A stretch of 64,000 nt of DNA from Schmidtea nova. Its lineage: Eukaryota. The DNA is taken from the NCBI GenBank assembly GCA_044892505.1, contig CM097882.1:284642001-284706000 (forward strand), written 5' to 3'. Shown here piece by piece: positions 12,966 to 64,000 of this stretch. Numbering within the stretch: position 1 is the first letter of the stretch; each line of letters opens with the position of its first letter. The notes below the pieces were generated by a model that was not told the DNA's origin, searched no databases, and saw only the letters and a list, made by a program, of their open reading frames with translations. Made by a program: the position numbers and the translations under genes.

Positions 12966-13796
12966 TCAGTATGGAGCATAATGAGGGTAATGAGGCTTTT
13001 TTTTGGAATCAAGAAGAAAACAAGACGACTTTAATTTACACATATGTTTAGATATATTTGTGGTAGACATATCGGATATGGCTGTATTGGAACTTTGACA
13101 AGTAGAGATTGCAGCAGAATCTGAATATGTAATTGCAGACTGTTGGTCTATACTAGAATTCTGAGATAAGGGTTTAGTTTTGTTTGACGTTATAGAATTC
13201 ATAAATGATTTGATGCTAAATATATACATAAAAGTATCATGCGTAAAACCCAAATTAGTAGAGCATGCACATTCACATAATAATTAAAGTATACTAACTT
13301 TGCATTTATGAGCATTTCTGCCGTATTAATAGATTCAGGGGTTCCCGATATCGTGATCTGTCGATCTGTTGATTTCTCTTCGGTGTATGATATTTTTATT
13401 TGAGCACCAGATAAAGATCTTATTTCGTTTATTGTAGACCCTCCTCGACCAATTATGCAACCAATCATGTCATTAGTAATATTAAATTCTTTGACAAGCT
13501 GAGAACCAACTGAAGACGTTTGAGATGATGATAAGGAATCTGATTTTACCGAATAAGGTAAAGGTTGATGCTGCCTTGGCCACATTGGAATTGTCGGAGG
13601 GAATACAGTATATGGGTTATGTTCTGAAACAGTTTTACAATATCCAATAACAGTCTTATAAAAAATATTAACCTGATACAAAAGTCGGAAACATATTCTG
13701 AGTGAAAATCTGTCCAGTTGCAGATTGAGAAACCGGATACAGTGCAATTGTAGGAGACGCATTATTTTGTTGGTATCCATCCATGTGTTTCATCAT
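12966..13796 (-). CDS. PCBP: PCBP/mub-like poly(rC)-binding protein, exons 8-10 (13796-13673, 13623-13299, 13215-12966): KH3 and Ser-rich C-terminus; part 3 of one gene spanning 34732-12966
   Basis: KH3 KEFNITNDMIGCIIGRGGSTINEIRSLSGAQIKIS...RQITISGTPESI. GT-AG introns of 49 and 83 nt have consistent phases; the frame ends ...HYAPY-TGA. Confidence 0.9.
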
Positions 13797-26608: not shown

Positions 26609-29600
26609 TGTGCTTAATTTAATTATTGTGTTTAATTTAATTTCAATTGTTTAAATAGGCAGTTGATGTTACAAAAATAAATTTTCAAAAACTCGTTGGT
26701 AATAACTTATTTTTACTACAAGTTATCACGACTATCGATGGAAATTTTGAAATTTTTGGAAAAATTCGATGGAACAGGCAATGTTGCAAGCTGATTTTCT
26801 CAAATCAAATCAATTGTAAAGATGTCGAAGATAGAAACTATAGAAGTTTTTATGCCTATTATTTTGAAAAGCGATGCATATGCCGTCTACGAACATTTAT
26901 CAGAAAAGGACAAGGCTAGTTTTGAAGCAATCGAGGATGCATTGGAAAAAGCTTTTTCTTCAAGTATGTTTTTATATCATACGAAAAAATGAGAAATTAT
27001 AGATGGACTGGAGGATCAGTGGATGTATTTTTGGCCGATCTAAGATTTCATGCAAACCTTGCAAGAGTGAATGAGAACTCCGTTAGGAACTCTTTTGTCG
27101 TAGGACTACCTAAAGACGTGTCGAGATTGTTGCTGGCTATTCCAAATATTGATACTATGTCAATGGAGGATATTGTTCAGGTGACACGGGCAATGATGAA
27201 TACGAGAGTTCAAGACATTGAATGTGTCAACATTGCATATAACAAAGTAAAACGTTCAACTCATTGCGATAAGATTGGCCATGTAGCTGAACGTTGTTCT
27301 AAGAAGTTTGGTACAAGGTGTTGGTCTTGTAATAGCACCGATCACATATCTAGAGTATGTCCAAATAAGAATTCAAAAAACGATAACAGGGTAGCACTAA
27401 CGCCGGTGTCTACTCCATTGAACCAGTAATGGCGTTGCAAATAATCACAATTAAAGTGGATGGGAGAGAGGCAAATGCTTTAATTGATTCCGGATGCTCA
27501 AGATCTGTTGTTTTGGCTTCGTTGGTATGCAAAATGTTGAGAAGAACGGACGAGGTGATGATAGCAAATGGAACCTCTGTGTCGTGTTATTGTGATATAT
27601 TGGTAAACTTGGTGATTAGAGGTATAGATTTACGAGTAAATTGTCTGGCTCTCGAAAAATTACCCTACGATATTGAAATGATCCTGGGCATGGATATTAT
27701 TGGAAGATTAGGGGGTGTCCGGATTAGTACAGATGGAGTCGTTTTTTTCGAAAGAGAAGGTATGTGTGCTAAGACTGGATCGACAATACCGCCGCCGACA
27801 AAACCGCCGCCCCCATACAAAAGTAACTATTATTAAATGTAAGTATTATGTATTAATTTTAGACAAAAATTTAAATAGTTAACCGCAAAAGCATTCATCG
27901 TAGACATAATGTCTTTGACATTTTTTACTTGAACCTTTCTACCGCCATACTCTAAGCAAACTACATAATGTAACATTTGATTTTTTTGAAATATTTGATC
28001 ATTTATAATTTACGAGTATTTTTCAAAATACTCGAGTATCGTTTACAGTTTATGAAACATCAATGCATTTTTAGAAAGTGCATTTTGTGATTCATCAATC
28101 TTTTATTCACAGTCCTAATGGTAGAAATTATATACGATATATATCGATTCCACGACAACAACTTTCTCTGATTTAGTCAATTTGTTCTAAATGACATATG
28201 TTTATATTACTTTTCAAACAAATAAATTAAAATCGAAGTAATCAGCATTCCTACAAACTGTATAAAACATTTTTTTAAAATTTATTTTGGTTTCCGCCGC
28301 TTATGTCGGCGGCGGTCATGTCGCGACGGTATTGTCACCGGCGGTAAAGTCGGGGCGCCGTGCTGAGTGATAAGTGTGTCACTGAGGCAAGTTCTTTTCC
28401 GAGCGTCATCAATATTATAGACGAAGATTTCGAAGCTAGATTCGACAAGAAATGGGTTGTCAAATGGAAATGGAAGTCTGGATCAGCGATATTGTGGAAC
28501 AAGATTGCTTGTTATAAGATGGCAAACGATATTCAAGCAACTTTTGATGCAGAGATGAAGCGTTGGATAGAGGAAGGATGGCTTGTACCGGCCGAATCAA
28601 GCGTCGGTAGTACGATTCCATTAATGGCAGTGGATCAGCCGAACAAGAATAAAGTTCAACCTGTTATGGATTTCCGAGAATTGAATAAGTTCGTCAAGAG
28701 TCACATTGGGCAAAGTGACGTGTGTGGGGAGTCATTGAGATAATGGCGAAAGATGGTAGAGATGTTATTATGCTTGACTTAAAGAATGCTTATTTACAGT
28801 TGCATGTCGATAAAGAATGTTGGAAGTATCAAAAGGTATGCTATGACGATAAGTTTTAGACTGGGATTCGGGTTGAATGTAGCCCCAAAAATTATGTCTA
28901 GTGTTTTGAAAAGGTGTTGAGTTTACGAAGTGACATTGCTGAAGCGACAGATAGTTATATAGACGACAAAATAGTAGACCAGTCATTAGTTTGCGTCTCG
29001 GATGTTATAAATCATTTGCAGAAATATGGGTTAGAAGTGAAAGATCCAGAGAAGTTTGATGATGCAAGAGTTTAAGGATTGCAAATAACAATGAGTAACA
29101 TTGATCGGATTTGGACAAGAGGTAATGAGCTTCCTGTCATGAAGAATGGGCCGGAAGTGTTGAGACGTCAATTATTTTCAATTTGTGGTCAATTGCTCGG
29201 TCACTATTCAGTGGCAAATTGGTTGCGAGTTGCGTGTGGTTTCATAAAACGTCATAGTAGTGGAGAGAAATGGGATGATAAAATTGGGCATATTGCGCAA
29301 AAGATGTTAACTGACACTATTGGTCGTGTTTTTAAAGACGAATGGCATGTGTCAGAACAACTTAATGGTGTAGTATGGTGTGACGCAAGTAGTTTGGCCT
29401 TGGGTGTTTGTTTGGAAATTGGTGGTCATGTAGTTGAAGATGCGTCCTGGTTGAGGAAGAAGATTGATGTATGTCATATTAATGTAGCCGAGCTAGATGC
29501 CGTTATTAAAGGCATAAATGTAAGTCTAGCTTGGGGCCTGAAAGATATCTTAATAAAAACAGATTCAGCCACTGTGAAAAGTTGAGTTACCTCTATATTG

Positions 29601-30889
29601 TCGAATCAAGAAAGAGTACGTACACACGGAATATCATATATGTTAATTCAGCGGAGATTAAAAATAATCAAGGAGTTGCAAGATAGTTTCAATTTAGCTC
29701 TTTCGATAGAGTTAGTATCTACAGAGAGGAATAAAGCGGATATACTAACCAGAGTACCTAAGACGTGGTTGTACTGGGTAAAGACTGTAACATCTATAGT
29801 AATAACAAGAATGGATGACTTAGTAAAGCCTCACAATGCTCATCATTTAGGCGTCGAAAGAACGTTGCATCTTGCTAAGAGAAAATTCCCAAATATTACT
29901 AAGAAAGACGTGCAAGATGTCATTAGCAAATGTGTAGAATGCAGATCCATTGATCCAGCACCGGTTACATGGAAGCACGGGAAGCTTGATGTCGAGGTAA
30001 ATCGGAAGAGGATCGCGATCGACGTGACTCACTATAAGGATAAAAGGTATTTAACAATTATCGATTGTGGACCGATTCGTTTTGCAATTTAGAGGGAGAT
30101 AGCTAGCGAGGAAGTTGGAGTCATAATTCAAAATTTAGAGCAGGTATTTAGGGAAAGAGGTTCACCAGTAGAAATACTCGTAGATAACGCTACATCCTTT
30201 CGATCTGGAGCAATTGATTCTCTGAGCAAGAAGTGGGGGGGTTAGGCGCATGTTCAGATGTGCATATCGACCTGCTGGAAATGGGATAATCGAGCAGAAC
30301 CATAGAACGATCAAGCGTATGGCAGCACGGTCTGGCAGAGAACCATTGGATATGGTTTATTGGTACAATGTGGCGTTAAGAGACGATGTTGATGAGAACT
30401 TGTCTCCTTCCGATCTAATGTTCAATTACGTATCGAGACACCCAGGTGAAGTGGAAGATGTCTTGCCGGATCCAGAAGGCGGGTTTACTGTGGGAGAGGC
30501 GGTTTTTGTAAAACCTCCTGATGCAAGATGTACTTCTCGGTGGAACGAAGGAAGAGATTGACGGTATGCCTCGCTATGTTTCCGACATAAGAAAAAAGAG
30601 AATTCCAGAGAGGACGAATTACAAATACAAGACACTACCGAGGTTGCAGAGATAGAAGTTGACGATTTAGTAGGTAGAAGTTTAAGAGTACGAAATCCGC
30701 CACGTTACTTAGATGACTATGAACTAACGAGCGATATTGATGCTGACATCACGGGGAGATGTGCTTAATTTAATTTATGTGCTTAATTTAATTATTGTGT
30801 TTAGTTTAATTTCAATTGTTTAAATAGGCAGTTGATGTTATAAAAATAAATTTTCAAAAACTCGTTGGTAATTACTTATTTTTACTACA
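26609..30889 (+). mobile_element. Full-length degenerate Ty3/Gypsy LTR retrotransposon (gag-PR-RT-RH-IN) in PCBP intron 5
   Basis: LTRs 26609-26720 and 30760-30889 (TG...CA); PPT GGGGAGA; flanks CAAAC/TAAAC. Domains: gag from ATG 26738 with CCHC knuckles, PR LIDSGCS, RT PVMDFRELN / LDLKNAYLQL / YIDD, RH WCDASSLALG...HINVAEL, IN HHCC and IAIDVTH...NGIIEQ. Multiple stops and frameshifts. Confidence 0.93.
27774..28359. mobile_element. ~590 bp non-autonomous DNA element inserted between Gypsy protease and RT
   Basis: AT-rich core interrupts pol. Subterminal motifs ACCGCCGCCGACA and GACAATACC recur inverted at the other end. Flanks GTGCTAAG/GTGCTGAG resemble an 8 bp hAT-type target duplication. 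Confidence 0.65.
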
Positions 30890-39424: not shown

Positions 39425-41907
39425 CTATAAAATGAAGTCATCTGAAAATGAAGTACTTCCCGAGGAGTTCAGAAAATCATTAATGAAACCTTCTTCAACT
39501 AGAAAATTCAGTTCATTGTCAAGGTCTATTTCTCCGTTGAGACTGAATTCGAATTTGCAAATCGGCTCTTCATCTGGATCTAATGTGTTCAATTTTTTAA
39601 TTTGTGGATTATTCATGTCCCCGTTGTCCATGGCAGTCACCAAGTCCATTATGAATTCGTCTAATCGATCTGCGGCTCTAATTACTGGATATTTCGCAAA
39701 AATCAATAATTTCAAAATAATCAATAGTTTGAAAATAATCAATAATTTCAAAATAATCAATAATTTCAAAATAATCAATAATTTCAAAATAATCAATAAT
39801 TTAAATATAATCAATAATTTAAATATAATCAATAATTTCAAGATAATAAATAATTTCAAAATAATCAAAAATTTCAAAATAATCAATAATTTCAAGATAA
39901 TATATAATTTCAAAATAATCAATAATTTCAATATACATAACTTAACAAGCATGGCACTAAAACAATTAAAACCGAACGTCAATCCAAATATATATTTTGC
40001 ACAATATATTTCGAGAACTTAATTCTCTTCATCAGGTGCTACCCAATCTTACATTCAACTATGAATCAAATAAATCGATTTTTTCAAACAAAATTATATT
40101 AATTTTTAAAAAAAAATATATATAAATTTTATATATCAGTTAAAAAATTTTAAAACGATTAAAAATATTTTTAATTTAAATAAATTAATCTTAAAATATA
40201 ATATTCTTTTAATTACAAAAAAATATTTTTTTAAGAATATTTTATAAATATTTCCATATTTATAAACAACAGAATGACTGAAAACAAAATCCATAATCCT
40301 CAATTGAAAATGCTTTGAAAAAATCGATTTATTTGATTCATAGTTGAATGTAAGATTGGGTAGCACCTGATGAAGAGAATTAAGTTCTCGAAATATATTG
40401 TGCAAATTATATATATTTGGATTGGCTTTTGTTTTTAATTATTTTAGTGCCATGCTTGTTGAGTTATGTATTAAAGAAAGATAATAATCCGTCAGTTGTT
40501 CCGGTATTCTGTGAAAGTTTGTCTAGGAAAATGTTTGTATTTAATTTTTATAATTCTAAATGTATAGAGTTTTATATTGTCAAATTAATATTTCGATTGA
40601 ATGATGAGGTTTGCATTCGTGCTGATTTCTTCTCTTATTCTATTATTTATGAATTAATTGATGTGATTGTTGGCGATTCTGAGTTTTCTGTATTGTTCTT
40701 TGCTCTGTTCTCGTTTATATTTTCAAACGTCATGGGTGAAATGCCACATACAATGGAAAAGACTACCCGTCTTCTCTGTATTCGAGTTTCAGAGCGGAGT
40801 CAATTAATGGGATTTAGTTTTGTTTTCAGTCATGTCGATGTTTGTAAATATGTGAGTGTGAGAGTTTTGGGTGCGTTTGTTTGCCTCATTTTTTGTGGTT
40901 TAAGTAAATTAACTGATGTGATTGTTGATGATGTTTATTTTCTTCTTTTGATTTGTGTTCTATACTCGTTTAATTTTTCAAACGTCATGGGCGAAATGCC
41001 ACATACTTTTTTCTGTACTCGAGTATTAGAGCATTTTCAATTGAGGATTATGGATTTTGTTTTCAGTCATTCTGTTGTTTATAAACATGGAAATATTTAT
41101 AATATATTCTTAAAAAAAATATTTTTTTGTAATTACAAGAATATTATATTTTAAGATTAATTTATTTAAATTAAAAATATTTTTAATCGTTTTAAAATTT
41201 TTTGACTGATATATAAAATTTATAATATATATTTTATTTTAAAAATTATTACTAATTTGTTCGAAAAAATCGATTTATTTGATTTATTTTTGGATGTAAC
41301 ATTGGTAGCACCCGATGAAGAGAATTAAGTTCTCGAAATATATTGTACAAAATATATATTTGGATTGGCGTTTGTTTTTAATTTCAATATAATCAATAAT
41401 TTCAAGAAAATAAATAATTTCAAAATAATCAATAATTTCAAGATAATCAATAATTTCAAGATAATCAATAATTTCAAGATAATAAATAGTTTCAAAATAA
41501 TCAATAATTTCAATATAATAAATAATTTCAAAATAATCAATAATTTCAAAATAATCAATAATTTCAAAATAATCAAAAATTTCAAAATAATCAAAAATTT
41601 CAAAATAATCAATAATTTCAAAAATAATTAAGTTACAAAAAAATCAATAATTAAAAAAATCAATAATTAAACTAATCTTTAATTACCATGAATTTCGTCG
41701 ATCTTTTTATTAATATTGTCCATTGATAGAGGAAATAGCATTTTTTTGTAATAATTTATCCAATCCAATAATTCTACTATTTCACCTAAATGTAACAATT
41801 GAAAACCATAAACCTCAGCAAAAAACATTTTACCATATTCAATTCCTAAAGCCGAATATTTAATTTTCAAAGATTCATGGTATGCTTTTTTCTTTAATCG
41901 GCAGATT
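39425..41907 (-). CDS. Two exons of an uncharacterised gene (41907-41687 and 39684-39425) with a weak Sec6/EXOC3-like segment
   Basis: Stop-free exons with phase-compatible splice sites (G|GTAATT ... CCAG|TA). KKAYHESL...LHLGEIVELLDWINYYKKML resembles the Sec6 YHxxL...EIVxLLxW motif. The 2.0 kb intron contains the minisatellite and the PLE. Confidence 0.5.
39698..39933 (+). repeat. 18 bp minisatellite (AAAATAATCAATAATTTC)n, left half, ~13 copies
   Basis: Directly visible tandem array; produces the IINNFK and KLLIIL ORFs. Confidence 0.95.
39999..40039 (-). ncRNA. Minimal type I hammerhead ribozyme motif, copy 1
   Basis: GCAC CTGATGA A GAGAA TTAAG TTCTC GAAA TATA TT GTGC: 4 bp stem I, intact core, 5 bp stem II, palindromic ATATAT in place of stem III. 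Confidence 0.7.
40363..40403 (+). ncRNA. Minimal type I hammerhead ribozyme motif, copy 2
   Basis: Identical 41 nt motif to copy 1 on the opposite strand. Confidence 0.7.
41308..41348 (+). ncRNA. Degenerate hammerhead motif, copy 3
   Basis: Core CCGATGA instead of CTGATGA, and stem I partner GTAC instead of GTGC; stem II and GAAA are intact. Confidence 0.5.
41380..41628 (+). repeat. 18 bp minisatellite, right half, ~13 copies
   Basis: Same unit and orientation as 39698-39933. Confidence 0.95.
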
Positions 41908-48426: not shown

Positions 48427-51400
48427 TATTAGATGTTGATAGAACATCTTCTAAATCATTTCCTAAATCAGATTGAGAAGTTGAAGTCATAATTCCAAGT
48501 TTTTATTTTATGAAATATTATATAATTTTAAAACAAGTTTTCAGCCTTGAACAAAATATTTTAAAATGTAAATATTTAAAATTATTTATGAAAATTATAT
48601 TTTATTAAAATTTAATTATATATTTTACCGACTTTTAAAAATTAAAATTATAAAAAATTAAATACTCATTTAATTATAATAATTATTTTAAAACTTATTA
48701 AATTTAAATGGTTTATCATGTCAAATAATTTTAATAAATCATTAAAATATTTAGTTCTCAGTTGAAAACACCTCTTCTTTAAGAAATTTCTTCATCTTTT
48801 CAACATTTCTTTGGAGCATTTTCCCACTTTGGTCTTGTAGCAGATATCGGCGATCGTGGATCTTCTGCATTATTCTGTATGGCCCTTCGTATCTTTCCTT
48901 GTCTTTTGTTCTTGATTCTATTTTTACCAGTACATCGTCTCCAATATCGAAGGATCTTTTTGTCTGGGTTGTTTCTCATGTATATCCTTTTTGTGAAATC
49001 GGCGTTTTACTATGAAATTGTTCTCGAGCTATTTTTTTTCCAAATATTACTTCTGCTGGACTTAGCCCAATTGATTTCTGAAACGTTGCATTCAAGATAA
49101 ATTCAATTTCTGGTATGATATCTGCCCAATCCGTTCTACTTTTCCCTTTTAATGATGCATTTATATAATCTCTTATTGTCCTGATTTGACGTTCTATCAA
49201 ACCATTTGTATTATGATGGTACGGACTTGAAAAGAATAGTGTAGTTTCCATTGATTTTGTAAAATCAATCATCATCTTGGATTCAAATACTTTTCCACAA
49301 TCTGTGTGAATTTCCTTTGGTGCTCCAAATATAAGAATCCATTTTTGAAGTATTGTTTCTTTCACCGTTTCCTCATCCTGTTTAGCGACAGCCGTCAGAG
49401 AGATATATCTGCTAAATTTATCAATAATTGCTATTATATATCTTTCTGAATGTTTCCTGTAATGAGCCACATATATCAATGTACACTTTTTCCCATGGTT
49501 CTTCTGCTGTCAGTTTTATTGCCTCTTCCCTCATTTTTGTTGTTACAACTTTCGTTCTTTGACATGCTTCGCATTGTCCAATTGTTTCTTTTACTGATTC
49601 TTTTATGTCTTTCATATCGTAATTGTCTGCTACATATTTTGTCACTTTTTATGCTCCTGTGTGCGATATCAAAATATGTATACTTTTTATCATTTCTTGT
49701 CTTTTGTCTTTTAGTATCTATATCTTACCCTCTATAGTTTTCACCACATTGTCTACCAGTATAAATTTCCAACTAGAACCATGTGCTATTTCCTTTTTTA
49801 TCTGTTCTATTCCTGTATTATTTTTTGACATTTATAATCTTCAGTTTTTTCCATCGTGTTTATTCTTCGAGTTTTCATTCTTTCCACTTTCGCGTCTTCG
49901 TGTGCCAATAAACATTGTGTACATGTTCCACTTGTACTCCTTGACAACATATCTGCATTTGCATGAGCCGTACCTTTCTATACTCTATTTTAATATCCAG
50001 ACTACTGAGGTAGTTAATCCATGTCTGTAATTGCGTTGTTATTGGTTTCTTTGTAGATAACATAAACGTGATAGCTTTATGATCTGTTCTCAAAGTGAAC
50101 CGTTTTCCATATAAATAATGATTGAAGTGTTGACAAAAATAATAAATTGCTAGCAACTCTTTTCTTTTTATGCAATATCCCTTTTCATGATTGTTCATTG
50201 CATGAGAACCGTATGCTATTACCTTTTTATACCCATTATCATATTTCTGTGATAATACAGCACCAATCGTGTCAAAACTAGCATCTGTATCCAGAATGAA
50301 TTCTCTTTCGAAATCTGGAAAACCTAGAATAGATGAGAACATTATAGCATTTTTCATATTTTCGAATGCGATGTTGTATCCATCAGTCCAAATTAATTTT
50401 TTGTTGTTTAACTCGCATAACTCTTCTATAACTCTTGCCTTTTTTGCGTATTCTTTGATAAATATTTTGTAATAATTGCATATTCCTAGGAGGCTTCTCA
50501 GATTCTTATAACATTTTGGTCTTTCAAATGATTTAATCACGTCTTGCTTTGATGGGTCCGTCTGTATACCGTCTTTGTTGATTATATGACCTAAGAATTT
50601 GACTTCTTTCTTAAGGATATGGCACTTTTCAGGGTTTATCCTAAGACCCACCTTTCCAATTTTGTCAAGCACCTAATTAAAGACTTCATAATGATGATTG
50701 ATCGTCTCTGCAAATATCAAAATATGGTCCAGGTATACTGCTGCATATCTCATACCCAATAATACTTTTCCCATCATTTCCTGAAAACTAGCAGGCACCG
50801 CTGATATTCCAAATGGCATTCTGTTAAAACAGTATTGCCGTGACGGTTGAAAACGCCGTTTTTAACTTTGATTCCTCTTCTAGTTCTACTTGATAATATG
50901 CATTTTCCAAGATCTATTGAACTGAAATACTTTTTTCCACCTAATTTATCTAACATCTCTGATACATTTGGCATAGGGAACGCCTGTCTCTCTGTTACTA
51001 GGTTTAATTGACTGAAATCAAGGCATAATCTGATATCTTGCTTTTCTTTCTTCCAGACGCATATTAATGGAGTGTTCCATGGCAAATTACACTTTTTGAT
51101 GATATTGTTTTCCCATAGATTTTTTTTATCGCTTCATCTATTTTACCTTCCCAGTTGACTGTTTGTCTCCAAGGTTTAATATTTATCGGTTTTCCTTGAG
51201 CTTATATTTTGTGCTTCAACAGCTTTGTGCAACCGATGTTTAATTTATCAGCCATAAAAACATTTTGATTCTTTTTTATAATGTCTAGTAGTATCAGGTT
51301 ATCTATATCTATATATGTATTCTTTGGTCTTTTAAATAGATCCATCTTCGTTATTGTCTTCCCAAATTTGGCTTCGATACTGCATGTGTGTCCTTGCTTC

Positions 51401-53385: not shown

Positions 53386-53689
53386 CCTCACAGAAATGAT
53401 TGCATTAGTTGTTTGTTACTATCCGTTCATCTATATTTAACAACAAGCCAAGATTGAACTTGCCAAGCTACAGTATAAAAGCGATTATAATCGAAGCAAA
53501 CATCCTTAAGGTGACCCAGTATGGATAAAACTGAACATAAAAAGTCGTGAATATCATAAAACCATTATCAAGTACAACGTTCTCAGCCAGGAATAACGGG
53601 TATTATATGCTGAGAGTAGTACCATATGGGCTATCTACACCACCAGTGCCCCCTCACCTATCCCCCCCCCGATTTTTTTTTTTTTTTTG

Positions 53690-54425
53690 AAATTTTTTGA
53701 ATTTTAAGGTCAATTTTTTACGCCATTTTGAATTTTAAGGTCAAATTTTTACGCCATTTTGAATTTTAAGGTCAAAATTTTACGGCATTTTGAATTTTAA
53801 GGACAAAACTTTACGCCATTTTGAATTTTAAAGTTAATTTTGTACGCCATTTTGAATTTTAAAGTTAATTTTGTACGCCATTTTGAATTTTAAAGTTAAT
53901 TTTGTACGCCATTTTGAATTTTAAGGTTAAATTTCTACGCCATTTTGAATTTCAAGGTCAAGTGGTGTTAAAAATCAAAATATTGTCGGCCATTTTGAAT
54001 CGTCCATTTTGTTTTTCAAGTGGTGTTAAAAATCAAAATATTGTCGGCCATTTTGAATCGGCCATTTTGTTTTTCAAGTGGTGTTAAAAATCAAAATATT
54101 GTCGGCCATTTTGAATCGGCCATTTTGTTTGTCAAGTGGTGTTAAAAATCAAAATATTGTCGGCCATTTTGAATCGGCCATTTTGTTTTCAAGTGGTGTT
54201 AAAAATCAAAATATTGTCGGCCATTTTGTTTTTCAAGTGGTGTTAAAAATCAAAATATTGTCGGCCATTTTGAATCGGCCATTTTGTTTGTCAAGTGGTG
54301 TTAAAAATCAAAATATTGTCGGCCATTTTGAATCGGCCATTTTGAATCAGCCATTTTGTTTTTCAAGTGGTGTTAAAAATCAAAATATTGTCGGCCATTT
54401 TGTTTTTCAAGTGGTGTTAAAAATA
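53690..54425 (+). repeat. Tandem arrays: ~31 bp CGCCATTTTGAATTTTAAGGTCAAATTTTTA units, then nine ~58 bp CAAGTGGTGTTAAAAATC...GGCCATTTTG units
   Basis: Directly visible; mirrored at 63300-64000 with ten 58-mer units. Confidence 0.95.
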
Positions 54426-55609
54426 CAAAATTATGTACTTAATATATGAAAAATATTTTTATTTAATGTAAATTAAGTAAAGTCAAATAAAGTACTTTAT
54501 ATATTAAGTATGTGATATATGAAAAGATTTTTATTTAATTTAAATAAAGTATGTCATATATGAAAATATTTAAAGTCAAATTAAATACTTTATATATGAA
54601 ATTATTTTATTTAATTTAAATAATTTAGCTCATATTGTGAAAAATAAAATAGAAAACAAAATAATAATTATTATAACTTTATTATTTGTATTTTTTGCTT
54701 AAAAAATTTAATATTATTAATATCTATCAAGGAAAGAGAAGACAAGATGAAGAACAAGTGCTTAATATTGCCAGTCCTAAAGAGCGGTGATTAAATGCCT
54801 GTGCCTAAAAGACACGCTGGGCAAGTAATCGCGTCCACAAGGGTCGTCGGTGCCTCCCCCAAAGTGGGGTCAATAGGACCTGGGCATCAATAGTTCGCTA
54901 TCTATAGCGATCACGTCTCAGATAAGCAAGGGTAGCCAGCTACCAAGACATCATCCACAACGTAGTGTTTCATACGCCATGAATGTGCCGGCAAGTTATC
55001 GTCATAGACACTATGACCGAAATTAATTAATATGTACACAAACATTCTCAATCATCGCAGAGGCCTCCCATTAGGTTGGATAACGGTCATCCACCACAAT
55101 GACTAGCATGCTTCATTTAAAAAATAAAATAAGGGATAACAACCCCCCCAACCCTCATTTATTAATATGTATAATAAAATATTAAAGTTTTCTTGTCATT
55201 GTCCTCTCCGGCTTTTCCCAGTCAAATCTAATAATAAAAGATATTGATTAATTATTAAAAGAATAAAAATAGTAATAATAAGAAAAATAAGAACAATAAT
55301 ATTAATTGTAACTTTAATAATAATAAAAGTGTCCCCATCATATATTCTCTTAGTCAAATCTATCAATAACTATTATTGATAGATTTATNNNNNNNNNNNN
55401 NNNNNNNNNNNNNNNNNNNNNNNNNNNNNNNNNNNNNNNNNNNNNNNNNNNNNNNNNNNNNNNNNNNNNNNNNNNNNNNNNNNNNNNNNNNNNNNNNNNN
55501 NNNNNNNNNNNNNNNNNNNNNNNNNNNNNNTTATTATTAATAATAATAAAAACAATATTAATGATAATAATAAAATAATGAATAATGATAATTAATGATA
55601 ATATTAATG

Positions 55610-55649
<40 letters not shown>

Positions 55650-56608
55650 TAATAATAATAATAATAAATATTGATGATNNNNNNNNNNNNNNNNNNNNNN
55701 NNNNNNNNNNNNNNNNNNNNNNNNNNNNNNNNNNNNNNNNNNNNNNNNNNNNNNNNNNNNNNNNNNNNNNNNNNNNNNNNNNNNNNNNNNNNNNNNNNNN
55801 NNNNNNNNNNNNNNNNNNNNNNNNNNNNNNNNNNNNNNNNNNNNNNNNNNNNNNNNNNNNNNNNNNNNNNNNNNNNNNNNNNNNNNNNNNNNNNNNNNNN
55901 NNNNNNNNNNNNNNNNNNNNNNNNNNNNNNNNNNNNNNNNNNNNNNNNNNNNNNNNNNNNNAAAAACAATATTTATATTAATAATAAAAATGATAAAAAT
56001 AATCAATCATAATAAAAGTTTATTTTTACCCTTTTAATATTACACAATGTTTTCTTTGCATTATCTTAATCGTTACACTTCAAAACGCTACACGAGCTTG
56101 AATTTTTAGGTTAAGAATTGCATGAACGACATTTTGAGCATCTATGAGTGTACCATAGCATATGCCTTTAAAATACTTTCTAAAAGCTATTCTTTGTAAA
56201 AAATAAATAACTGTTTGACAAATTTTCCGCTTTCTAGCGACCACCCTGAATTATAAAATTATTAATGATTAATTAAAATATGATTTGTTTTTGTGATATA
56301 TTAATTAATATTTTATTAATTAATTAATCGATTATGATCTTATTGATATATTATCAATACATGTTATCCTTGTCCTGGTTTATCACCACTTAATTGTACA
56401 TGTGTTATTATTATTTATTGGTGTCGCATTAATACCGTACCAGTGACATTTGTAGGGGATCATATGATGTCGTTAATTGTTTAGCCAGAGTTGCAATTGA
56501 AATATTTAGAAATTGAATATTAAATATAATTATAAAAGTAAATAATTAATATTTTTTTTTAAATAATGGAAAAAGGAATGAGTACAAAATTATTGAAAAT
56601 AAACATAC

Positions 56609-57092
56609 CATTGAAGGATATTTGATTTCTGTGAGAAGGTATTTCGAATACTTATACTTGGACATCTCAGTGGCATTGCTGAACACTTGTCTATACAATA
56701 TTCGGAATGTGTTTAACTACCATTTGTGGTAATCAGCATACGACCAATGGACTAGTACTTGATCCGATTCCTAGCATATGTCCCAAATAAGTCATTGGAC
56801 AATTATATTTCAAAAATAACCTTCGAATTCAGTTCTTCAATCATCGGAGCTTCGTTTCCGACGTCCATAAATGACACGGGATTCGTCCAAATACTTGTGA
56901 CGGTGTGTGTCGGTTGAAAGAAAGCATGAACTCTGAATCGGTATTTATTCTGTGGTTGGATGATTTTATCGGTATTATAAAGAATTTATCGGTAATCTAT
57001 AATTAACAGAACAAATAAAAAATGTTACTTGCGATAATTAAATTATAGCTAGACTCTATCCTGCGTCTTTCACACAGAGATTGTTAATAAAA
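56609..57092 (-). pseudogene. FN3-domain gene fragment, left-arm copy
   Basis: Mirror image of 60626-61109. Confidence 0.6.
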
Positions 57093-57833
57093 CTTAACAG
57101 TTAAAAGAAAAGAATTTTTCATCCCAATTCCTGAAATTGTAAAATATAAAAATCGAATTTGTAAACAAAATTATAAATAATGAAATTGCTTAAAACAAAT
57201 ATTTATATATTTATATAATCTTTATATTAATATTTTTATAACTTGAAAATAAATATTTATAAATTGATTTAAACTTTATAAATTAGGTTAAACTTTATAA
57301 ATTAGATTACATTTTTATAATTTACTTTAAAAATTTAAAGAATTTGCTTTTTAATTTACTGTAATATTTTAGTTACAAATGATTTATAAGGGTTTTCATT
57401 GAACTTTTGAATGATAGAGTGATAAAATTTAAATGAGTAAAACATTTCTGAATATGTAAACTAATGCGCGCACAAGTATACTTTATCAACCAAGATTCTT
57501 ATGTTGCACAAAACACTTAGATTGCTTATGTAGAACAAGGTTTTCATGTAGAACAAGGTTCTCATGTAAAACAAGGTTTTCATGTAGAAATTTATTTGGA
57601 TTAATTTGATCGGATTATTCAATCAGAACCCGGTACGCAAAGACAATGATTAAACATTTATAAGTCAGAGTTTTATTGTGAATATTTAGTGGGCATGACA
57701 CTTACAATACAAGTGCACAACACTTACAATACAAGTACAATCAAATTGCACTACTTGTTCAATCAAATGAGTAATACACACACATCTTGGACAAATTTGT
57801 ATAAATACTTGAAAATTTATGATTATTTATAAA

Positions 57834-58125
57834 ATGAAACAAGAAATATTTATTATAAATTTGATTGATGGTCTCTTGTCTAAAGAAAAAGATGATGTAA
57901 TCATATAAAGTTTACAAATCCTAGTGTCCGATGCCGAGAAAATATATAATTCCAATCCCATCGACTATTCATAGATTTTGAACCAAAAATCGGCTACAAG
58001 CAAGAAACACGCATTAAAAAGCGTGTTTTACTCGTTATTTGAGTCTAAAATGGAGTGGTCACATGTCATTGTGGCGTTCATGTATATTAAATAGATAATG
58101 GATAATTCGGGTTCAAATTATGAAA
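57834..58125 (+). pseudogene. Truncated copy of the Bcl-2-family gene (cut at the inner duplication breakpoint; lacks BH2 and TM)
   Basis: Mirror of 59884-59593; the frame runs into the spacer and stops (NYEIVF*). Confidence 0.75.
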
Positions 58126-58354
58126 TTGTATTTTAAATTTTAAAGTTTTATTTAGAACTATAACATGAATTTTAGTATAAAAACCCGCTTTGTTTTTACA
58201 AGAACTTGACTCTAAAAACTATGATATACAGTTTGATTAAAATACAACTATTTTAATTTATTTAACCCGCGCGCGTTCTTTATTTACGATATATTCCCAA
58301 TAATTATTTCAACATTTGTGTCACAGAATATCATTTTATTATGTTAATTTCATG

Positions 58355-59312
58355 CTGGTAGAACCTTGCTAGCAGAACACTAGTAGCAGAACCTTTAGTA
58401 ACAAAACATTTTTTGTGATGGTTTTTATCTGCCAAGGCTCTTACTTGAACATTTATTACTGTTACAATTCAACTTCATTCATCATCAATTGTTATAATAA
58501 TTTCACCCATTAATATTTTCTCGATTGTTTTTTAAAGTAATTATTGGTTTTTCTAATTTTAATGTCGAATTTACTATAACAATTAGTTGACACTCATATA
58601 ATTTTCAAAAATTTTATACAGTAGCAGAACATTGTGAACAGAACATTGCTAGCAGAACATTTAGTAACAAAACATCTTTTGTGATGGTTTTTATGTGCTA
58701 AAGCTCATTACTCACACATATACTACAATAACAATCATTAGCATAATCCTTTATGAACTTCGATCAATGTAACAGACAAATTGTGAAAGTTTATTACATT
58801 TACTGATACATCTTTAATAACAATTATTATGTGAATATTTATTGATTGATGAATATCTATGTATGTTTGATGAATTTCAATGTATTTTTGATATTTTGTG
58901 GGTTTTTTCTTGTAATTGCACTATAGAATGATGATATTTCATGTATGCAATGCAAGTGTATGGTGCATGCAATACAGATGCATGGTGCATGCAATACAGA
59001 TGCATGGTACATGTAATACAGATGCATGACACATGCATATTACGCATCACAGTTATTTATATCAACAATTCAGACTTAAAATGTGATAAGTAACAAAGTA
59101 GTTGAACCCTATTATCAGAACATTAGTATCAGAACCTTAGTAGCAGAACATCTTTTGTGATGGTTTTTATCTGTAAAAGCTCATACTGAATATTTTCATT
59201 CGTGTATCAATAATCTCAAGTATCAGAACCTTCCTAACAGAACATTAATAGCATAACATTGGTAGCAGAACCTCTTTTGTGATGGTTTTTATCTGTAAAA
59301 GCTCATACTGTA
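58355..59312. repeat. Four dispersed ~90 bp modules: 3-4 TAGCAGAAC-type 13-mers plus invariant TTTTGTGATGGTTTTTAT
   Basis: Exact 18 nt core at 58411, 58677, 59153 and 59275. Confidence 0.9.
58958..59040. repeat. 22 bp tandem repeat CATGGTGCATGCAATACAGATG, ~3.5 copies
   Basis: Directly visible. Confidence 0.85.
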
Positions 59313-59347
59313 TTTTCCATTTATATGTCAATTAAACAAAAATAAAT

Positions 59348-59884
59348 TTATTTTCGATAAATTAAATTTACAATAGCATAAATACTACAGAGTCCAATTG
59401 TTATTTTCAACAGATTTTTCAATCTTTCTTTAGTTTTTCTAATAGTTCTACTATTTTCGGTCAATTCTATTAGTTTTTGCCATTGTCCATTTTCTTGAAT
59501 CCAGGGACATATTTCACTTTTGATAATCTTAAATAATCTTAATAATATAATTAAATAAAAACAATATACTTGTACTGACCATTGAAAATAATTTTCATAA
59601 TTTGAACCCGAATTATCCATTATCTATTTAATATACATGAACGCCACAATGACATGTGACCACTCCATTTTAGACTCAAATAACGAGTAAAACACGCTTT
59701 TTAATGCGTGTTTCTTGCTTGTAGCCGATTTTTGGTTCAAAATCTATGAATAGTCGATGGGATTGGAATTATATATTTTCTCGGCATCGGACACTAGGAT
59801 TTGTAAACTTTATATGATTACATCATCTTTTTCTTTAGACAAGAGACCATCAATCAAATTTATAATAAATATTTCTTGTTTCAT
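59348..59884 (-). pseudogene. Bcl-2 family gene (BH3, BH1, BH2, C-terminal TM), two exons (59884-59570, 59527-59348), three in-frame TAA/TAG
   Basis: MKQEIFIINLIDGLL...VII*SLQILVSDAEKIY (BH3-like), SLFESKMEWSHVIVAFMY (BH1-like), CPWIQENGQWQKL (BH2), LLKITIGLCSIYAIVNLIYRK* (TM). The 42 nt GT-AG intron matches the local intron size. Confidence 0.8.
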
Positions 59885-62074
59885 TTTATAAATAATCATA
59901 AATTTTCAAGTATTTATACAAATTTGTCCAAGATGTGTGTGTATTACTCATTTGATTGAACAAGTAGTGCAATTTGATTGTACTTGTATTGTAAGTGTTG
60001 TGCACTTTTATTGTAAGTGTCGTGCCCACTAAATATTCACAATAAAACTGTGACTTATAAATGTTTAATCATTGTCTTTGCGTACCGGGTTCTGATTGAA
60101 TAATCCGATCAAATTAATCCAAATAAATTTCTACATGAAAACCTTGTTTTACATGAGAACCTTGTTCTACATGAAAACCTTGTTCTACATAAGCAATCTA
60201 AGTGTTTTGTGCAACATAAGAATCTTGGTTGATAAAGTATACTTGTGCGCGCATTAGTTTACATATTCAGAAATGTTTTACTCATTTAAATTTTATCACT
60301 CTATCATTCAAAAGTTCAATGAAAACCCTTATAAATCATTTGTAACTAAAATATTACAGTAAATTAAAAAGCAAATTCTTTAAATTTTTAAAGTAAATTA
60401 TAAAAATGTAATCTAATTTATAAAGTTTAACCTAATTTATAAAGTTTAAATCAATTTATAAATATTTATTTTCAAGTTATAAAAATATTAATATAAAGAT
60501 TATATAAATATATAAATATTTGTTTTAAGCAATTTCATTATTTATAATTTTGTTTACAAATTCGATTTTTATATTTTACAATTTCAGGAATTGGGATGAA
60601 AAATTCTTTTCTTTTAACTGTTAAGTTTTATTAACAATCTCTGTGTGAAAGACGCAGGATAGAGTCTAGCTATAATTTAATTATCACAAGTAACATTTTT
60701 TATTTGTTCTGTTAATTATAGATTACCGATAAATTCTTTATAATACCGATAAAATCATCCAACCACAGAATAAATACCGATTCAGAGTTCATGCTTTCTT
60801 TCAACCGACACACACCGTCACAAGTATTTGGACGAATCCCGTGTCATTTATGGACGTCGGAAACGAAGCTCCGATGATTGAAGAACTGAATTCGAAGGTT
60901 ATTTTTGAAATATAATTGTCCAATGACTTATTTGGGACATATGCTAGGAATCGGATCAAGTACTAGTCCATTGGTCGTATGCTGATTACCACAAATGGTA
61001 GTTAAACACATTCCGAATATTGTATAGACAAGTGTTCAGCAATGCCACTGAGATGTCCAAGTATAAGTATTCGAAATACCTTCTCACAGAAATCAAATAT
61101 CCTTCAATGGTATGTTTATTTTCAATAATTTTGTACTCATTCCTTTTTCCATTATTTAAAAAAAAATATTAATTATTTACTTTTATAATTATATTTAATA
61201 TTCAATTTCTAAATATTTCAATTGCAACTCTGGCTAAACAATTAACGACATCATATGATCCCCTACAAATGTCACTGGTACGGTATTAATGCGACACCAA
61301 TAAATAATAATAACACATGTACAATTAAGTGGTGATAAACCAGGACAAGGATAACATGTATTGATAATATATCAATAAGATCATAATCGATTAATTAATT
61401 AATAAAATATTAATTAATATATCACAAAAACAAATCATATTTTAATTAATCATTAATAATTTTATAATTCAGGGTGGTCGCTAGAAAGCGGAAAATTTGT
61501 CAAACAGTTATTTATTTTTTACAAAGAATAGCTTTTAGAAAGTATTTTAAAGGCATATGCTATGGTACACTCATAGATGCTCAAAATGTCGTTCATGCAA
61601 TTCTTAACCTAAAAATTCAAGCTCGTGTAGCGTTTTGAAGTGTAACGATTAAGATAATGCAAAGAAAACATTGTGTAATATTAAAAGGGTAAAAATAAAC
61701 TTTTATTATGATTGATTATTTTTATCATTTTTATTATTAATATAAATATTGTTTTTNNNNNNNNNNNNNNNNNNNNNNNNNNNNNNNNNNNNNNNNNNNN
61801 NNNNNNNNNNNNNNNNNNNNNNNNNNNNNNNNNNNNNNNNNNNNNNNNNNNNNNNNNNNNNNNNNNNNNNNNNNNNNNNNNNNNNNNNNNNNNNNNNNNN
61901 NNNNNNNNNNNNNNNNNNNNNNNNNNNNNNNNNNNNNNNNNNNNNNNNNNNNNNNNNNNNNNNNNNNNNNNNNNNNNNNNNNNNNNNNNNNNNNNNNNNN
62001 NNNNNNNNNNNNNNNNNNNNNNNNNNNNNNNNNNNNNNNNNNNNNATCATCAATATTTATTATTATTATTATTA

Positions 62075-62120
<46 letters not shown>

Positions 62121-64000
62121 CATTAATATTATCATTAATTATCATTATTCATTATTTTATTATTATCATTAATATTGTTTTTATTATTATTAATAATAAN
62201 NNNNNNNNNNNNNNNNNNNNNNNNNNNNNNNNNNNNNNNNNNNNNNNNNNNNNNNNNNNNNNNNNNNNNNNNNNNNNNNNNNNNNNNNNNNNNNNNNNNN
62301 NNNNNNNNNNNNNNNNNNNNNNNNNNNNNNNNATAAATCTATCAATAATAGTTATTGATAGATTTGACTAAGAGAATATATGATGGGGACACTTTTATTA
62401 TTATTAAAGTTACAATTAATATTATTGTTCTTATTTTTCTTATTATTACTATTTTTATTCTTTTAATAATTAATCAATATCTTTTATTATTAGATTTGAC
62501 TGGGAAAAGCCGGAGAGGACAATGACAAGAAAACTTTAATATTTTATTATACATATTAATAAATGAGGGTTGGGGGGGTTGTTATCCCTTATTTTATTTT
62601 TTAAATGAAGCATGCTAGTCATTGTGGTGGATGACCGTTATCCAACCTAATGGGAGGCCTCTGCGATGATTGAGAATGTTTGTGTACATATTAATTAATT
62701 TCGGTCATAGTGTCTATGACGATAACTTGCCGGCACATTCATGGCGTATGAAACACTACGTTGTGGATGATGTCTTGGTAGCTGGCTACCCTTGCTTATC
62801 TGAGACGTGATCGCTATAGATAGCGAACTATTGATGCCCAGGTCCTATTGACCCCACTTTGGGGGAGGCACCGACGACCCTTGTGGACGCGATTACTTGC
62901 CCAGCGTGTCTTTTAGGCACAGGCATTTAATCACCGCTCTTTAGGACTGGCAATATTAAGCACTTGTTCTTCATCTTGTCTTCTCTTTCCTTGATAGATA
63001 TTAATAATATTAAATTTTTTAAGCAAAAAATACAAATAATAAAGTTATAATAATTATTATTTTGTTTTCTATTTTATTTTTCACAATATGAGCTAAATTA
63101 TTTAAATTAAATAAAATAATTTCATATATAAAGTATTTAATTTGACTTTAAATATTTTCATATATGACATACTTTATTTAAATTAAATAAAAATCTTTTC
63201 ATATATCACATACTTAATATATAAAGTACTTTATTTGACTTTACTTAATTTACATTAAATAAAAATATTTTTCATATATTAAGTACATAATTTTGTATTT
63301 TTAACACCACTTGAAAAACAAAATGGCCGACAATATTTTGATTTTTAACACCACTTGAAAAACAAAATGGCTGATTCAAAATGGCCGATTCAAAATGGCC
63401 GACAATATTTTGATTTTTAACACCACTTGACAAACAAAATGGCCGATTCAAAATGGCCGACAATATTTTGATTTTTAACACCACTTGAAAAACAAAATGG
63501 CCGATTCAAAATGGCCGACAATATTTTGATTTTTAACACCACTTGAAAAACAAAATGGCCGATTCAAAATGGCCGACAATATTTTGATTTTTAACACCAC
63601 TTGAAAAACAAAATGGCCGATTCAAAATGGCCGACAATATTTTGATTTTTAACACTACTTGAAAAACAAAATGGCCGATTCAAAATGGCCGACAATATTT
63701 TGATTTTTAACACCACTTGAAAAACAAAATGGCCGATTCAAAATGGCCGACAATATTTTGATTTTTAACACCACTTGAAAAACAAAATGGACGATTCAAA
63801 ATGGCCGACAATATTTTGATTTTTAACACCACTTGACCTTGAAATTCAAAATGGCGTAGAAATTTAACCTTAAAATTCAAAATGGCGTACAAAATTAACT
63901 TTAAAATTCAAAATGGCGTACAAAATTAACTTTAAAATTCAAAATGGCGTACAAAATTAACTTTAAAATTCAAAATGGCGTAAAGTTTTGTCCTTAAAAT
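59593..64000 (-). repeat. Right arm of the giant inverted duplication (continues beyond the window)
   Basis: Reverse complement of 53794-58125. Confidence 0.97.
60626..61109 (+). pseudogene. Fibronectin type III repeat gene fragment with 32 and 50 nt introns and in-frame TAA/TAG
   Basis: IIQPQNKYRFRVHAFF...SIWTNPV (FN3 F-G strands), then ESDQVLVHWSY...*LNTFRILYRQV (next FN3, B and C strands). Confidence 0.6.

Follow-up and report, generated by a model that had tools for sequence, protein, structure and literature searches.

Introduction

Mavericks/Polintons are believed to copy themselves as linear viral genomes by protein priming; to our knowledge, this mode of replication has scarcely been seen in animals. 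Among protein-primed linear replicons, defective genomes of a snap-back or inverted-duplication type are known, for example the incomplete particles of adenovirus. Large palindromes are also found on primate Y chromosomes, where the arms are kept alike via arm-to-arm gene conversion. The Drosophila element FB has very long inverted repeats of tandem subrepeats, little unique centre and copy-to-copy length variation, and its autonomous copies encode a MULE-related transposase. Target duplications are 9 bp in FB and 7 bp in Galileo. Galileo elements have very long inverted repeats of tandem arrays, little unique middle and structurally variable copies (PMC3573991).

The locus described here lies in a window of 64,000 nt from Schmidtea nova, and the window is the whole stretch of DNA that was analyzed. 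From its sequence, positions 53615-64193 would represent one inserted copy, 10,579 bp long, of a non-autonomous, palindrome-shaped transposon from the Maverick/Polinton family, a reading to which we assign a probability of roughly 85%. The window family shares with Mavericks/Polintons a 6-bp target-site duplication (TSD) and long terminal inverted repeats that start with 5'-AG. Unlike a Maverick/Polinton, the window copy lacks all of the genes, forms an inverted repeat along its entire body and has non-viral cargo inside. With FB and Galileo the family shares very long inverted repeats made up of subrepeats in tandem, a unique centre that is small or missing, and variable copy length, whereas its ends are common to a Maverick family of this genome and not to carriers of a MULE or P transposase. 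No description of palindromic non-autonomous Maverick/Polinton derivatives surfaced in the literature searched.

Results

Extent of the inverted repeat

An earlier, sequence-only reading of the window had described a giant inverted repeat, which repeat search and BLAST bear out. The arms span 53615-58125 and 59594-64193, including 193 nt beyond the window, and about 1.47 kb of single-copy sequence lies between them. The arms are composed of the following features.

53615..54431, plus strand: left outer terminal inverted repeat, with the 34-nt terminus, a C-run, a T-run and 31-mer and 58-mer arrays
53695-53961, left arm: 31-mer array (TRF)
53958-54431, left arm: 58-mer array (TRF)
54432..55388, plus strand: left family-specific outer arm, present in sisters c2, c24, D and E and absent from 16-kb copies
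54428-54663: AT-rich 41/72-nt repeats in the left family-specific outer arm
54720-55150: GC-richer 0.43-kb block in the left family-specific outer arm
55389..55961, no strand: left-arm (TAA)n tract with N runs at 55389-55530 and 55679-55961
55962..58125, plus strand: inner left arm, 99.7% reverse-complementary to 61756-59594
59594..61756, minus strand: inner right arm, by alignment to the left arm
61757..62332, no strand: right-arm (TAA)n tract with N runs at 61757-62045 and 62200-62332
62333..63289, minus strand: right family-specific outer arm, identical to 54217-55388 over the non-array part
63290..64000, minus strand: right outer terminal inverted repeat (58-mer and 31-mer arrays), which goes on to the terminus at 64193

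Identity is 99.68% between 55962-58138 and 61756-59581 (6 mismatches and 1 gap in 2177 nt) and about 96% between 53763-55388 and 64000-62333. The inner limit of homology is 58125/59594, as 58126-58138 is merely similar to its partner. All four substitutions listed in the sequence-only reading (57032, 57668, 57696 and 57710) are present and private to the left arm. The extra 58-mer unit that it reported is on the right arm; within the 58-mer array, indels of 59 nt and 14 nt separate the two outer arms. The outer arms also differ by two substitutions and by small C-run and T-run changes beside the terminus, and not at all within 54217-55388. Once the following 10 kb of the contig are added, the repeat extends outward to 53615 at one end and 64193 at the other, and the flanks further out are unrelated.

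The four N runs all fall within the non-coding (TAA)n tract and are mirrored between the arms. The interval bounded by the gaps is 573 nt long in the left arm and 576 nt in the right. Sequence that was read is collinear on both sides, and no reading frame crosses any of the four runs. The interpretation is independent of what the N runs contain. A proposed "hairpin island" in each arm folds no better than shuffled sequence (z -0.72), and no Rfam match was found in 54432..55388.

Termini and target-site duplication

The element opens and closes with the same 34-nt terminus (53615-53648, which begins AGTAGTACC) and is flanked by a hexamer on each side.

53609..53614, no strand: left copy of the 6-bp TSD, GCTGAG; the right copy, GTTGAG, lies beyond the window at 64194-64199

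Inspection of the sequence beyond 64000, proposed earlier as a check, placed the outer end at 64193, directly followed by the right TSD copy. The two hexamers match at 5/6 positions. Among ten paired elements the TSD is perfect in seven and matches at 5/6 positions in three, the window copy included. In the 1.25-Gb genome there are 206 forward and 209 reverse hits to the 34-nt terminus (control, 0 and 0), and many forward/reverse pairs are spaced 6-16 kb apart. Neither an empty site nor a second haplotype of the window locus was found in the assembly. Within 53615..54431 the 9-mer GCCATTTTG is present 21 times, against 0.7 hits expected for the window as a whole. Each arm has about 21 of these 9-mers in its subterminal arrays, which are likely protein-binding sites.

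Relationship to 16-kb Maverick/Polinton copies

The terminal inverted repeats, which run to hundreds of bp from a 5'-AG start, are common to a set of copies of 15.6-16.2 kb. BLAST homology between 16-kb copies A and B and the window element is confined to 53615-54431 (84-98%), and the 34-nt tip is identical. The 16-kb copies encode an rve integrase (Pfam 35.3 bits, cutoff 32.6), a Pox_A32-like ATPase (28.2 bits, cutoff 22.8) and a TBP-like protein (E 1e-14). In addition, their 1444-aa ORF is nearest to Endonuclease_7 and DNA_pol_B_2 clusters (score 0.97) and has a polymerase-B type motif, and another ORF is nearest to double-jelly-roll major-capsid clusters (Atlas score 0.97); these PolB and capsid identities are language-model look-alikes plus a motif, and Pfam, PHROGs and PDB sequence searches gave neither ORF a name. 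No protease or minor capsid was recognized in copies A and B. With their rve integrase, A32-like packaging ATPase and PolB-like and double-jelly-roll-capsid-like ORFs, the helper copies resemble Mavericks/Polintons, and they make up a young Maverick/Polinton family (polintovirus-like) in this genome.

No PolB or rve integrase ORF is present in 53615-64000, so the window copy is considered non-autonomous, and the 0.8 kb shared at the outside of its arms with the 16-kb copies points to a Maverick/Polinton derivative. It is decayed, with mirrored cargo in place of viral genes. The rve integrase of the helpers would have integrated the element in trans via the shared ends.

Also considered was a classical element of the Foldback or Galileo type (Mutator-like or P superfamily) whose ends resemble those of the Mavericks by chance. 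The family has very long inverted repeats of tandem arrays (31-mer and 58-mer), a scant or absent unique middle and copies that vary greatly in structure, features typical of FB and Galileo. However, the TSD is 6 bp rather than 9 or 7 bp, and the terminal 0.8 kb with its identical tip is common to the integrase/ATPase/PolB-like/capsid-like elements. No MULE or P transposase was seen, and the partners encode an rve integrase. We regard this alternative as improbable.

Sister copies and a probable module loss

At least a dozen sister elements at dispersed loci elsewhere in the genome share this mirror arrangement, which answers the earlier suggestion to search for other copies. The closest sister, C2, lies on another chromosome, is 13,028 bp long, has the order A, S', c', S, A' and carries a perfect TSD, AGTGAA. 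Its arms are in the same order as in the window copy at 98-99.6% identity, and module S is present in both arms around a 113-nt asymmetric centre. Internal deletions are found in copies C24, D and E, a different one in each. The corresponding features of the window copy are as follows.

58126..58238, plus strand: central unit "c", 113 nt, the asymmetric centre of the family's complete palindromes
58239..59593, plus strand: module S, single here and in both arms of complete sisters, with four 80-100-nt repeats and a 22-nt array

Module S has more than 30 genomic copies at about 98%. Since S stands in both arms of C2, the asymmetry of the window copy would reflect the loss of one S module and 13 nt (about 1.38 kb), which would account both for the 1.47-kb apparent spacer and for the interruption of the left Bcl-2-like frame. 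The earlier statement that the left arm is the derived copy does not fit this sister. No other scored locus has the 58125/58126 junction, and thus the deletion is probably private to the window locus. The palindrome itself appears to be older than the window insertion, because a subfamily just 90% identical is also palindromic.

Two other explanations bear on these copies. The first is a local inverted segmental duplication or palindromic amplicon of host DNA at the window site. Break-induced fold-back repair usually yields palindromes of this kind, with nearly identical arms around a spacer, and a host-type (Bcl-2-like) gene lies within the arms. However, the palindrome ends exactly at a terminus with more than 400 copies in the genome, a near-perfect 6-bp duplication lies at both of its edges, and the C2 sister has the same arms on another chromosome with a different, perfect duplication. 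These observations refute a local origin in practice, and we give it almost no credence. Both the inverted segmental duplication and the palindromic amplicon or minichromosome of the sequence-only reading are contradicted by the same structure at other loci with other flanks, while its "giant foldback-type mobile unit" was essentially right in view of the defined termini, the 6-bp TSD and the dispersed sisters of the same layout.

The kind of mobile unit, a gutted Maverick/Polinton derivative, had not been recognized in that reading.

The second explanation is that two single-arm elements were inserted or recombined head to head and the mirror is a composite. In C24 the two arms differ at 27 of 1551 positions and are nearest to different family members, L010 for one (11 differences) and D for the other (16), so that C24 may have a composite origin. 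The window copy, in contrast, has one terminus pair and one TSD, each of its arms is closest to the other (1 difference in 1551 nt), and its centre is the same as that of the C2 sister. Neither internal termini nor a second TSD was found at its centre. A composite origin of the window copy is thus very improbable, and a single inserted palindrome is preferred.

Bcl-2-like cargo

Divergent FN3 and Bcl-2 genes had been proposed in each arm. The Bcl-2-like frames are positioned as follows.

57834..58136, plus strand: left, truncated Bcl-2-like pseudogene, in-frame stops 57906-57908, 57972-57974 and 58092-58094
59348..59884, minus strand: right, full-length Bcl-2-like frame of 178 codons, in-frame stops 59810-59812, 59744-59746 and 59624-59626

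The left frame exits homologous sequence after 58125. The right frame has its BH1-like stretch in the arm and its BH2-like and tail-anchor stretches in S. Pfam Bcl-2 matched the BH1 piece of the window copy at E 0.067 and the stop-free piece of a 90%-identical copy at E 2e-4, both below the 31.4-bit gathering threshold, and the BH2 piece matched PDB Bcl-xL at E 0.003. The Bcl-2 reading is therefore retained on the Pfam and PDB matches, but the gene is not intact here, given its three in-frame stops. Like the Bcl-2 family, including the viral homologues of large DNA viruses, the cargo has collinear BH1-like, BH2-like and C-terminal hydrophobic tail segments; it differs in scoring under the Pfam threshold and in the stops of the window copy, and the likeness is drawn from sequence. 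The in-frame stops are common to all long-arm copies, and pN/pS of the frame is about 0.2 against the C-type subfamily. Judged from these comparisons, the cargo evolved under purifying selection across subfamilies and is a pseudogene in the window copy.

The FN3 gene was dropped, as there was no Pfam match at E up to 1 and no PDB FN3 match at E up to 10. The putative FN3 region is missing from the sister subfamily.

Concerted arms

Between the window and C2 copies, 8-9 substitutions or indels are common to both arms of one element only. Such changes, carried by both arms but not by the sister, indicate that the arms evolve in concert, in agreement with the earlier suggestion that they are kept homogeneous. 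In the other subfamily, 7/12 arm pairs have equal BLAST scores to a reference while the scores vary between elements, and the arms of L015 are 100% identical across 4311 nt. Young copies have arms 99.8-100% alike, and together with the shared, sister-absent changes this suggests that arms are re-equalized in propagation or by arm-to-arm conversion. "Both-arm" changes are also expected from mirrored assembly of one arm, and the argument for concert leans on copies whose arms differ. C24 is one such copy, and C-type arms have diverged by a few per cent. The mirror form is recurrent; for example, at C1:476320404-476330996 two polymerase genes of equal score sit next to each other in inverted orientation.

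An assembly artefact was weighed for the same reason. Here the real locus would be a single-arm element whose interior was mirrored by the assembler or by a fold-back chimeric long read. Several sister loci have 100% identical arms, as mirrored assembly would yield, and two features are unconfirmed in public contigs: none of the short public Logan contigs bridges the copy-specific junction 58125/58126, and the left-arm variant 57032 is unseen in them, though such contigs do drop rare variants. Against this, the window arms differ by the 4 substitutions, the array indels and the terminus run-length changes described above, and the locus is deep within a 612-Mb scaffold with a different unique flank on either side. 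Furthermore, C24 and the C-type copies have clearly diverged arms, and the same layout is found at many loci with proper TSDs. An artefact is therefore considered quite unlikely, and the palindrome is treated as a real insertion.

Discussion

Two routes to the origin and maintenance of the mirror shape are plausible at best. In the first, which we put forward tentatively, a Maverick that replicates by protein priming and strand displacement switches strands or snaps back while being copied, and mismatches are repaired in the displaced strand after it has folded into a hairpin. The signs of this route are indirect: the recurrent mirror forms, one of them made of polymerase ends, and the concerted arms. 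The second, given slightly less weight, is repair of a hairpin or break in the chromosome, with gene conversion afterwards. Other routes account for the remainder. Like snap-back defective genomes, the window family has one end duplicated in inverted orientation, giving identical termini, and would depend on a helper; its complete copies, at 13.0-13.6 kb, approach the 15.6-16.2 kb of the helpers from below. Unlike them, the copies here are chromosomal, number in the dozens, are built of cargo rather than helper genes and are known from integrated copies. Like primate Y palindromes, the family has arms of several kb at 99.8-100% identity, an asymmetric spacer and changes common to both arms, but those palindromes are single-locus host structures and this is a dispersed mobile family with termini and TSDs.

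A broader proposal, unlikely when all of its parts are taken jointly, is that an animal Maverick virus had satellite genomes able to form hairpins, of which the palindromes are the fossils in the chromosomes. They would have arisen by snap-back in protein-primed replication, with arms re-equalized in each replication cycle, so that arm divergence would date insertions as LTRs do. They would have grown toward the packaged genome length of the helper, and the selected Bcl-2-like gene would keep the infected cell alive.

For the window, the exotic readings of minichromosome and amplicon are removed. Near-perfect palindromes of 10-16 kb are sites of deletion and assembly error, and whoever annotates this genome or related ones needs to recognize them. 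On the evidence of this family, Maverick ends can mobilize kilobases of foreign cargo, here a Bcl-2-like gene that appears to have been kept under selection. If true, dispersed, mirror-image, gene-less derivatives with concerted arms would be indirect evidence for Maverick replication intermediates, and the concerted arms would provide a built-in clock for dating insertions.

Extent, termini and insertion of the palindromic element

The sequence-only reading described a giant inverted duplication in the last part of the window. This repeat was recovered by both a repeat search and BLAST, with positions 55962-58138 matching 61756-59581 at 99.68% identity (6 mismatches and 1 gap over 2177 nt), far above chance. 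The look past position 64000 that had been called for was carried out by adding the next 10 kb, and it placed the limits of the repeat at 53615 and 64193, outside of which the flanks are unrelated to each other. True arm homology stops at 58125/59594. The outer arm parts are ~96% alike, with indels limited to the tandem arrays (BLAST); they differ by 59-nt and 14-nt array indels, two substitutions and run-length changes adjoining the terminus. The four substitutions named earlier (57032, 57668, 57696 and 57710) are present, and each of them occurs in the left arm alone. The locus lies deep within a 612-Mb scaffold of an AT-rich animal genome of 1.25 Gb. The four N runs lie in the (TAA)n tract, which is non-coding, at mirrored places in the two arms. 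The gap-bounded interval measures 573 nt in the left arm and 576 nt in the right arm, with no reading frame across it, and the interpretation is independent of the N runs. The supposed hairpin island at 54720-55150, folded as DNA, gave a z of -0.72 and is a GC-richer block without unusual structure. An Rfam search of 53500-64000 at E values up to 0.1 returned no matches.

Both arms terminate in one 34-nt sequence (53615-53648, starting AGTAGTACC). A genome search allowing 2 mismatches found 206 forward and 209 reverse matches to this 34-mer, compared with 0 and 0 for a reversed-pattern control, and many of the matches form forward/reverse pairs spaced 6-16 kb apart. The hexamers outside the termini are identical in 7 of 10 readable paired elements (TGCAGT, TCTGAG, CCGCTA, AAAATA, TATTCC, AGTGAA and ACTATA) and match at 5 of 6 positions in the other three, including the window copy (GCTGAG and GTTGAG). 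Because these hexamers agree outside paired termini, insertion of the unit generates a target duplication of 6 bp. Among the origins proposed from sequence, a mobile unit is therefore retained, whereas local duplication is contradicted by the dispersed termini and the 6-bp duplications. The three imperfect duplications (the window copy and sister copies E and C) have one mismatch each, at a position that differs every time; two of the three flank young-looking elements, and the mismatches exceed the expectation from arm divergence. Sequence immediately next to the element (53402-53614 and ~90 nt beyond 64193) is unique to this locus, and the remaining flank sequence consists of other dispersed repeats. 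No empty site or second haplotype was found in the assembly.

Sister copies and the asymmetric centre

A search for other copies, as had been suggested, found the inner 2.1 kb of the arm at ~10 loci and the central module S (58239-59593) at more than 30 loci with ~98% identity. The closest relative, at C2:308676318-308689345, is 13,028 bp long, is flanked by the perfect duplication AGTGAA and is 98-99.6% identical. Along it, the outer arm is followed by the TAA tract and the inner arm, then by S in reverse, the 113-nt central unit c and S forward, after which inner arm, TAA tract and outer arm return in reversed orientation. The window copy has this layout minus one S and 13 nt. Because the sister keeps both S modules and the junction created by the loss is carried by no other scored locus, the asymmetry of the window copy is most simply read as a private 1.38-kb deletion beside the centre. 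This deletion would also be the reason that the left Bcl-2-like frame is cut. The cut frame had been taken to mean that the left arm is the derived copy, a view we do not retain, as the cut is no evidence of right-to-left copying.

Other copies are also incomplete. The C24 copy has lost part of its right inner arm, and copies D and E lack most of one side. A second subfamily, present at no fewer than 20 loci, overlaps the window element only in S, c and the innermost 0.47 kb; its arm module, of 2.5 kb, is a different one. At one readable locus the arms of this subfamily show 100% identity across 4311 nt, and no perfect 34-mer adjoins the subfamily's loci among the matches listed. The third subfamily, named C (8.1 kb), has only 90% identity and is likewise mirror-shaped. 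The mirror shape is a trait of the family and, since the 90% identical subfamily also has it, the palindrome appears to long predate the window insertion.

Maverick/Polinton helpers

Two terminus pairs with a spacing of ~16 kb delimit the helper elements A and B, which are 15,598 and 16,195 bp long. Their overlap with the window element is limited to 53615-54431 (tip, C/T runs, 31-mer array and 58-mer array), and their own inverted repeats are ~1 kb. The helpers contain the following open reading frames:

A/B: rve integrase, 35.3 bits (Pfam cutoff 32.6), with a chromodomain-like stretch after rve
A/B: Pox_A32-like ATPase, 28.2 bits (Pfam cutoff 22.8)
16-kb helpers (L048:2856-3326, minus strand; L050): TATA-binding-protein-like frame, Pfam TBP E 1e-14
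A/B: PolB-like frame of 1088-1444 aa with a polymerase-B type motif; nearest Atlas clusters Endonuclease_7 and DNA_pol_B_2, score 0.97
A/B: capsid-like frame; nearest clusters double-jelly-roll major-capsid, score 0.97

The TATA-binding-protein-like frame and the packaging ATPase are arranged head to head. For the 1444-aa frame, phmmer against PDB gave no matches, and PHROGs and Pfam gave only an Endonuclease VII-like stretch; its designation as polymerase-like is based on the Atlas look-alikes and the motif. At least 40 copies of the helper polymerase region are 98-100% identical, which marks the helper family as young.

Mavericks/Polintons are defined by a 6-bp duplication, 5'-AG ends and a gene set of the helper type. 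They have been reviewed (PMC6431247, PMC4028283). The window element contains none of the Maverick/Polinton genes and is thus a non-autonomous derivative of this class.

Concerted evolution of the arms

With E as the outgroup, the window copy's arms were compared with those of the C2 copy. Eight to nine changes (substitutions and indels) are common to the two arms of one element and missing from either arm of the other, although a 22-nt array indel at 57692, counted here as shared, may be two separate unit losses. Only four changes are private to one arm, all in the left arm of the window copy. Elements of the second subfamily vary in their BLAST score against a single reference (4365-4509 bits), and the arm scores within an element are equal in 7 of 12 pairs. 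Because changes are common to both arms of one element, independent drift of the arms of an old palindrome is excluded. The arms appear to evolve together, either equalised during propagation or by mutual conversion in the chromosome.

A misassembly that mirrored one arm would mimic this result, since it would yield the same both-arm pattern. However, the window copy's own arms differ, the arms of the C24 copy differ at 27 of 1551 sites with each arm closest to a different relative, and in C-type copies the divergence between arms amounts to a few per cent. These internal differences indicate two physical arms. The C24 copy (C24:25563-39162, L016/L017) is a 13.6-kb palindrome on a small unplaced contig, and its split arm affinities suggest inter-element recombination or misassembly.

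The public read data covered were Logan contigs 80-800 nt in length, drawn from four small libraries of this organism and from a relative. These contigs span neither the 58125/58126 junction nor the arm-private sites, so the assembly question is answered by the internal evidence only. In these contigs, abundance is 10-100 times higher for S and the inner 0.45 kb than for the outer arm. S holds four copies of an 80-100-nt unit (58360-58440, 58626-58706, 59096-59194 and 59218-59316), each containing several 12-14-mers of the AGCAGAAC type and, after them, a conserved tail of ~40 nt. Depth over these units in the public contigs exceeds that of the remaining S 10-40-fold, and therefore the unit is itself a far more abundant dispersed repeat.

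Origin of the mirror shape

At C1:476320404-476330996, on the same contig as the window, two helper polymerase regions lie inverted, 3.65 kb apart, with identical scores. This locus is a mirror-image element built from the polymerase end. Mirror forms therefore arise also from helper sequence and the process recurs in the family, a recurrence that favours a replication-linked origin. Polymerase strand switching, or self-priming by a displaced strand, could generate the mirror, and mismatch repair on a hairpin-folded single strand would also account for the concerted arms. Break-induced fold-back repair together with gene conversion in the chromosome is a serious alternative to the favoured replication-linked origin.

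Cargo

Divergent FN3 and Bcl-2 genes had been proposed in each arm. The FN3 gene found no Pfam or PDB support, and its region is absent from the second subfamily. The Bcl-2 proposal stands in part, as BH1-like and BH2-like signals are present in a frame that is interrupted by in-frame stops in the window copy:

59884-59348, minus strand: Bcl-2-like frame of 178 codons with BH1-like and BH2-like stretches and a hydrophobic tail
59810-59812, 59744-59746 and 59624-59626: in-frame stops, common to all long-arm copies

With the pieces of the frame searched separately, the BH1-like stretch of the window copy matched Pfam Bcl-2 at E 0.067 and the BH2-like stretch matched Bcl-xL (PDB) at E 0.003. A stop-free N-terminal piece from a C-type copy matched Pfam Bcl-2 at E 2e-4, below the gathering score. 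A 48-nt intron in the frame is possible. In other subfamilies the frame is broken differently. Between subfamilies, synonymous differences (~0.22 per site) exceed non-synonymous differences (~0.05 per site) by 4-5-fold, and for this reason the Bcl-2-like gene is read as having evolved under purifying selection while the family carried it.

Other features of the window

The remainder of the window contains the following:

10806-11255: mariner-like transposase fragment
13199-13780, minus strand: frame with a KH-domain-like stretch (GxxG motif), probably a host RNA-binding protein exon
26989-30092, plus strand: retrotransposon remnant with gag, protease, reverse transcriptase, RNase H and integrase frames in series
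39425-40022: long tandem array of 21-nt period in which either strand can be read as an open frame (LIILK-type repeats), probably satellite DNA and not a gene
48976-50672, minus strand: reverse transcriptase/integrase retrotransposon fragment

Significance

Maverick expansions in planarian genomes have been reported in one preprint, and a full-text literature search found no description of palindromic non-autonomous Maverick/Polinton derivatives. The window element is a decayed copy of a gutted, Maverick-ended palindromic transposon. Such an element is ordinary within the S. nova genome, yet little described. The window copy contributes an asymmetric centre whose origin becomes legible by comparison with the sister element, a count of changes shared between arms, and a signal of selection on the cargo.
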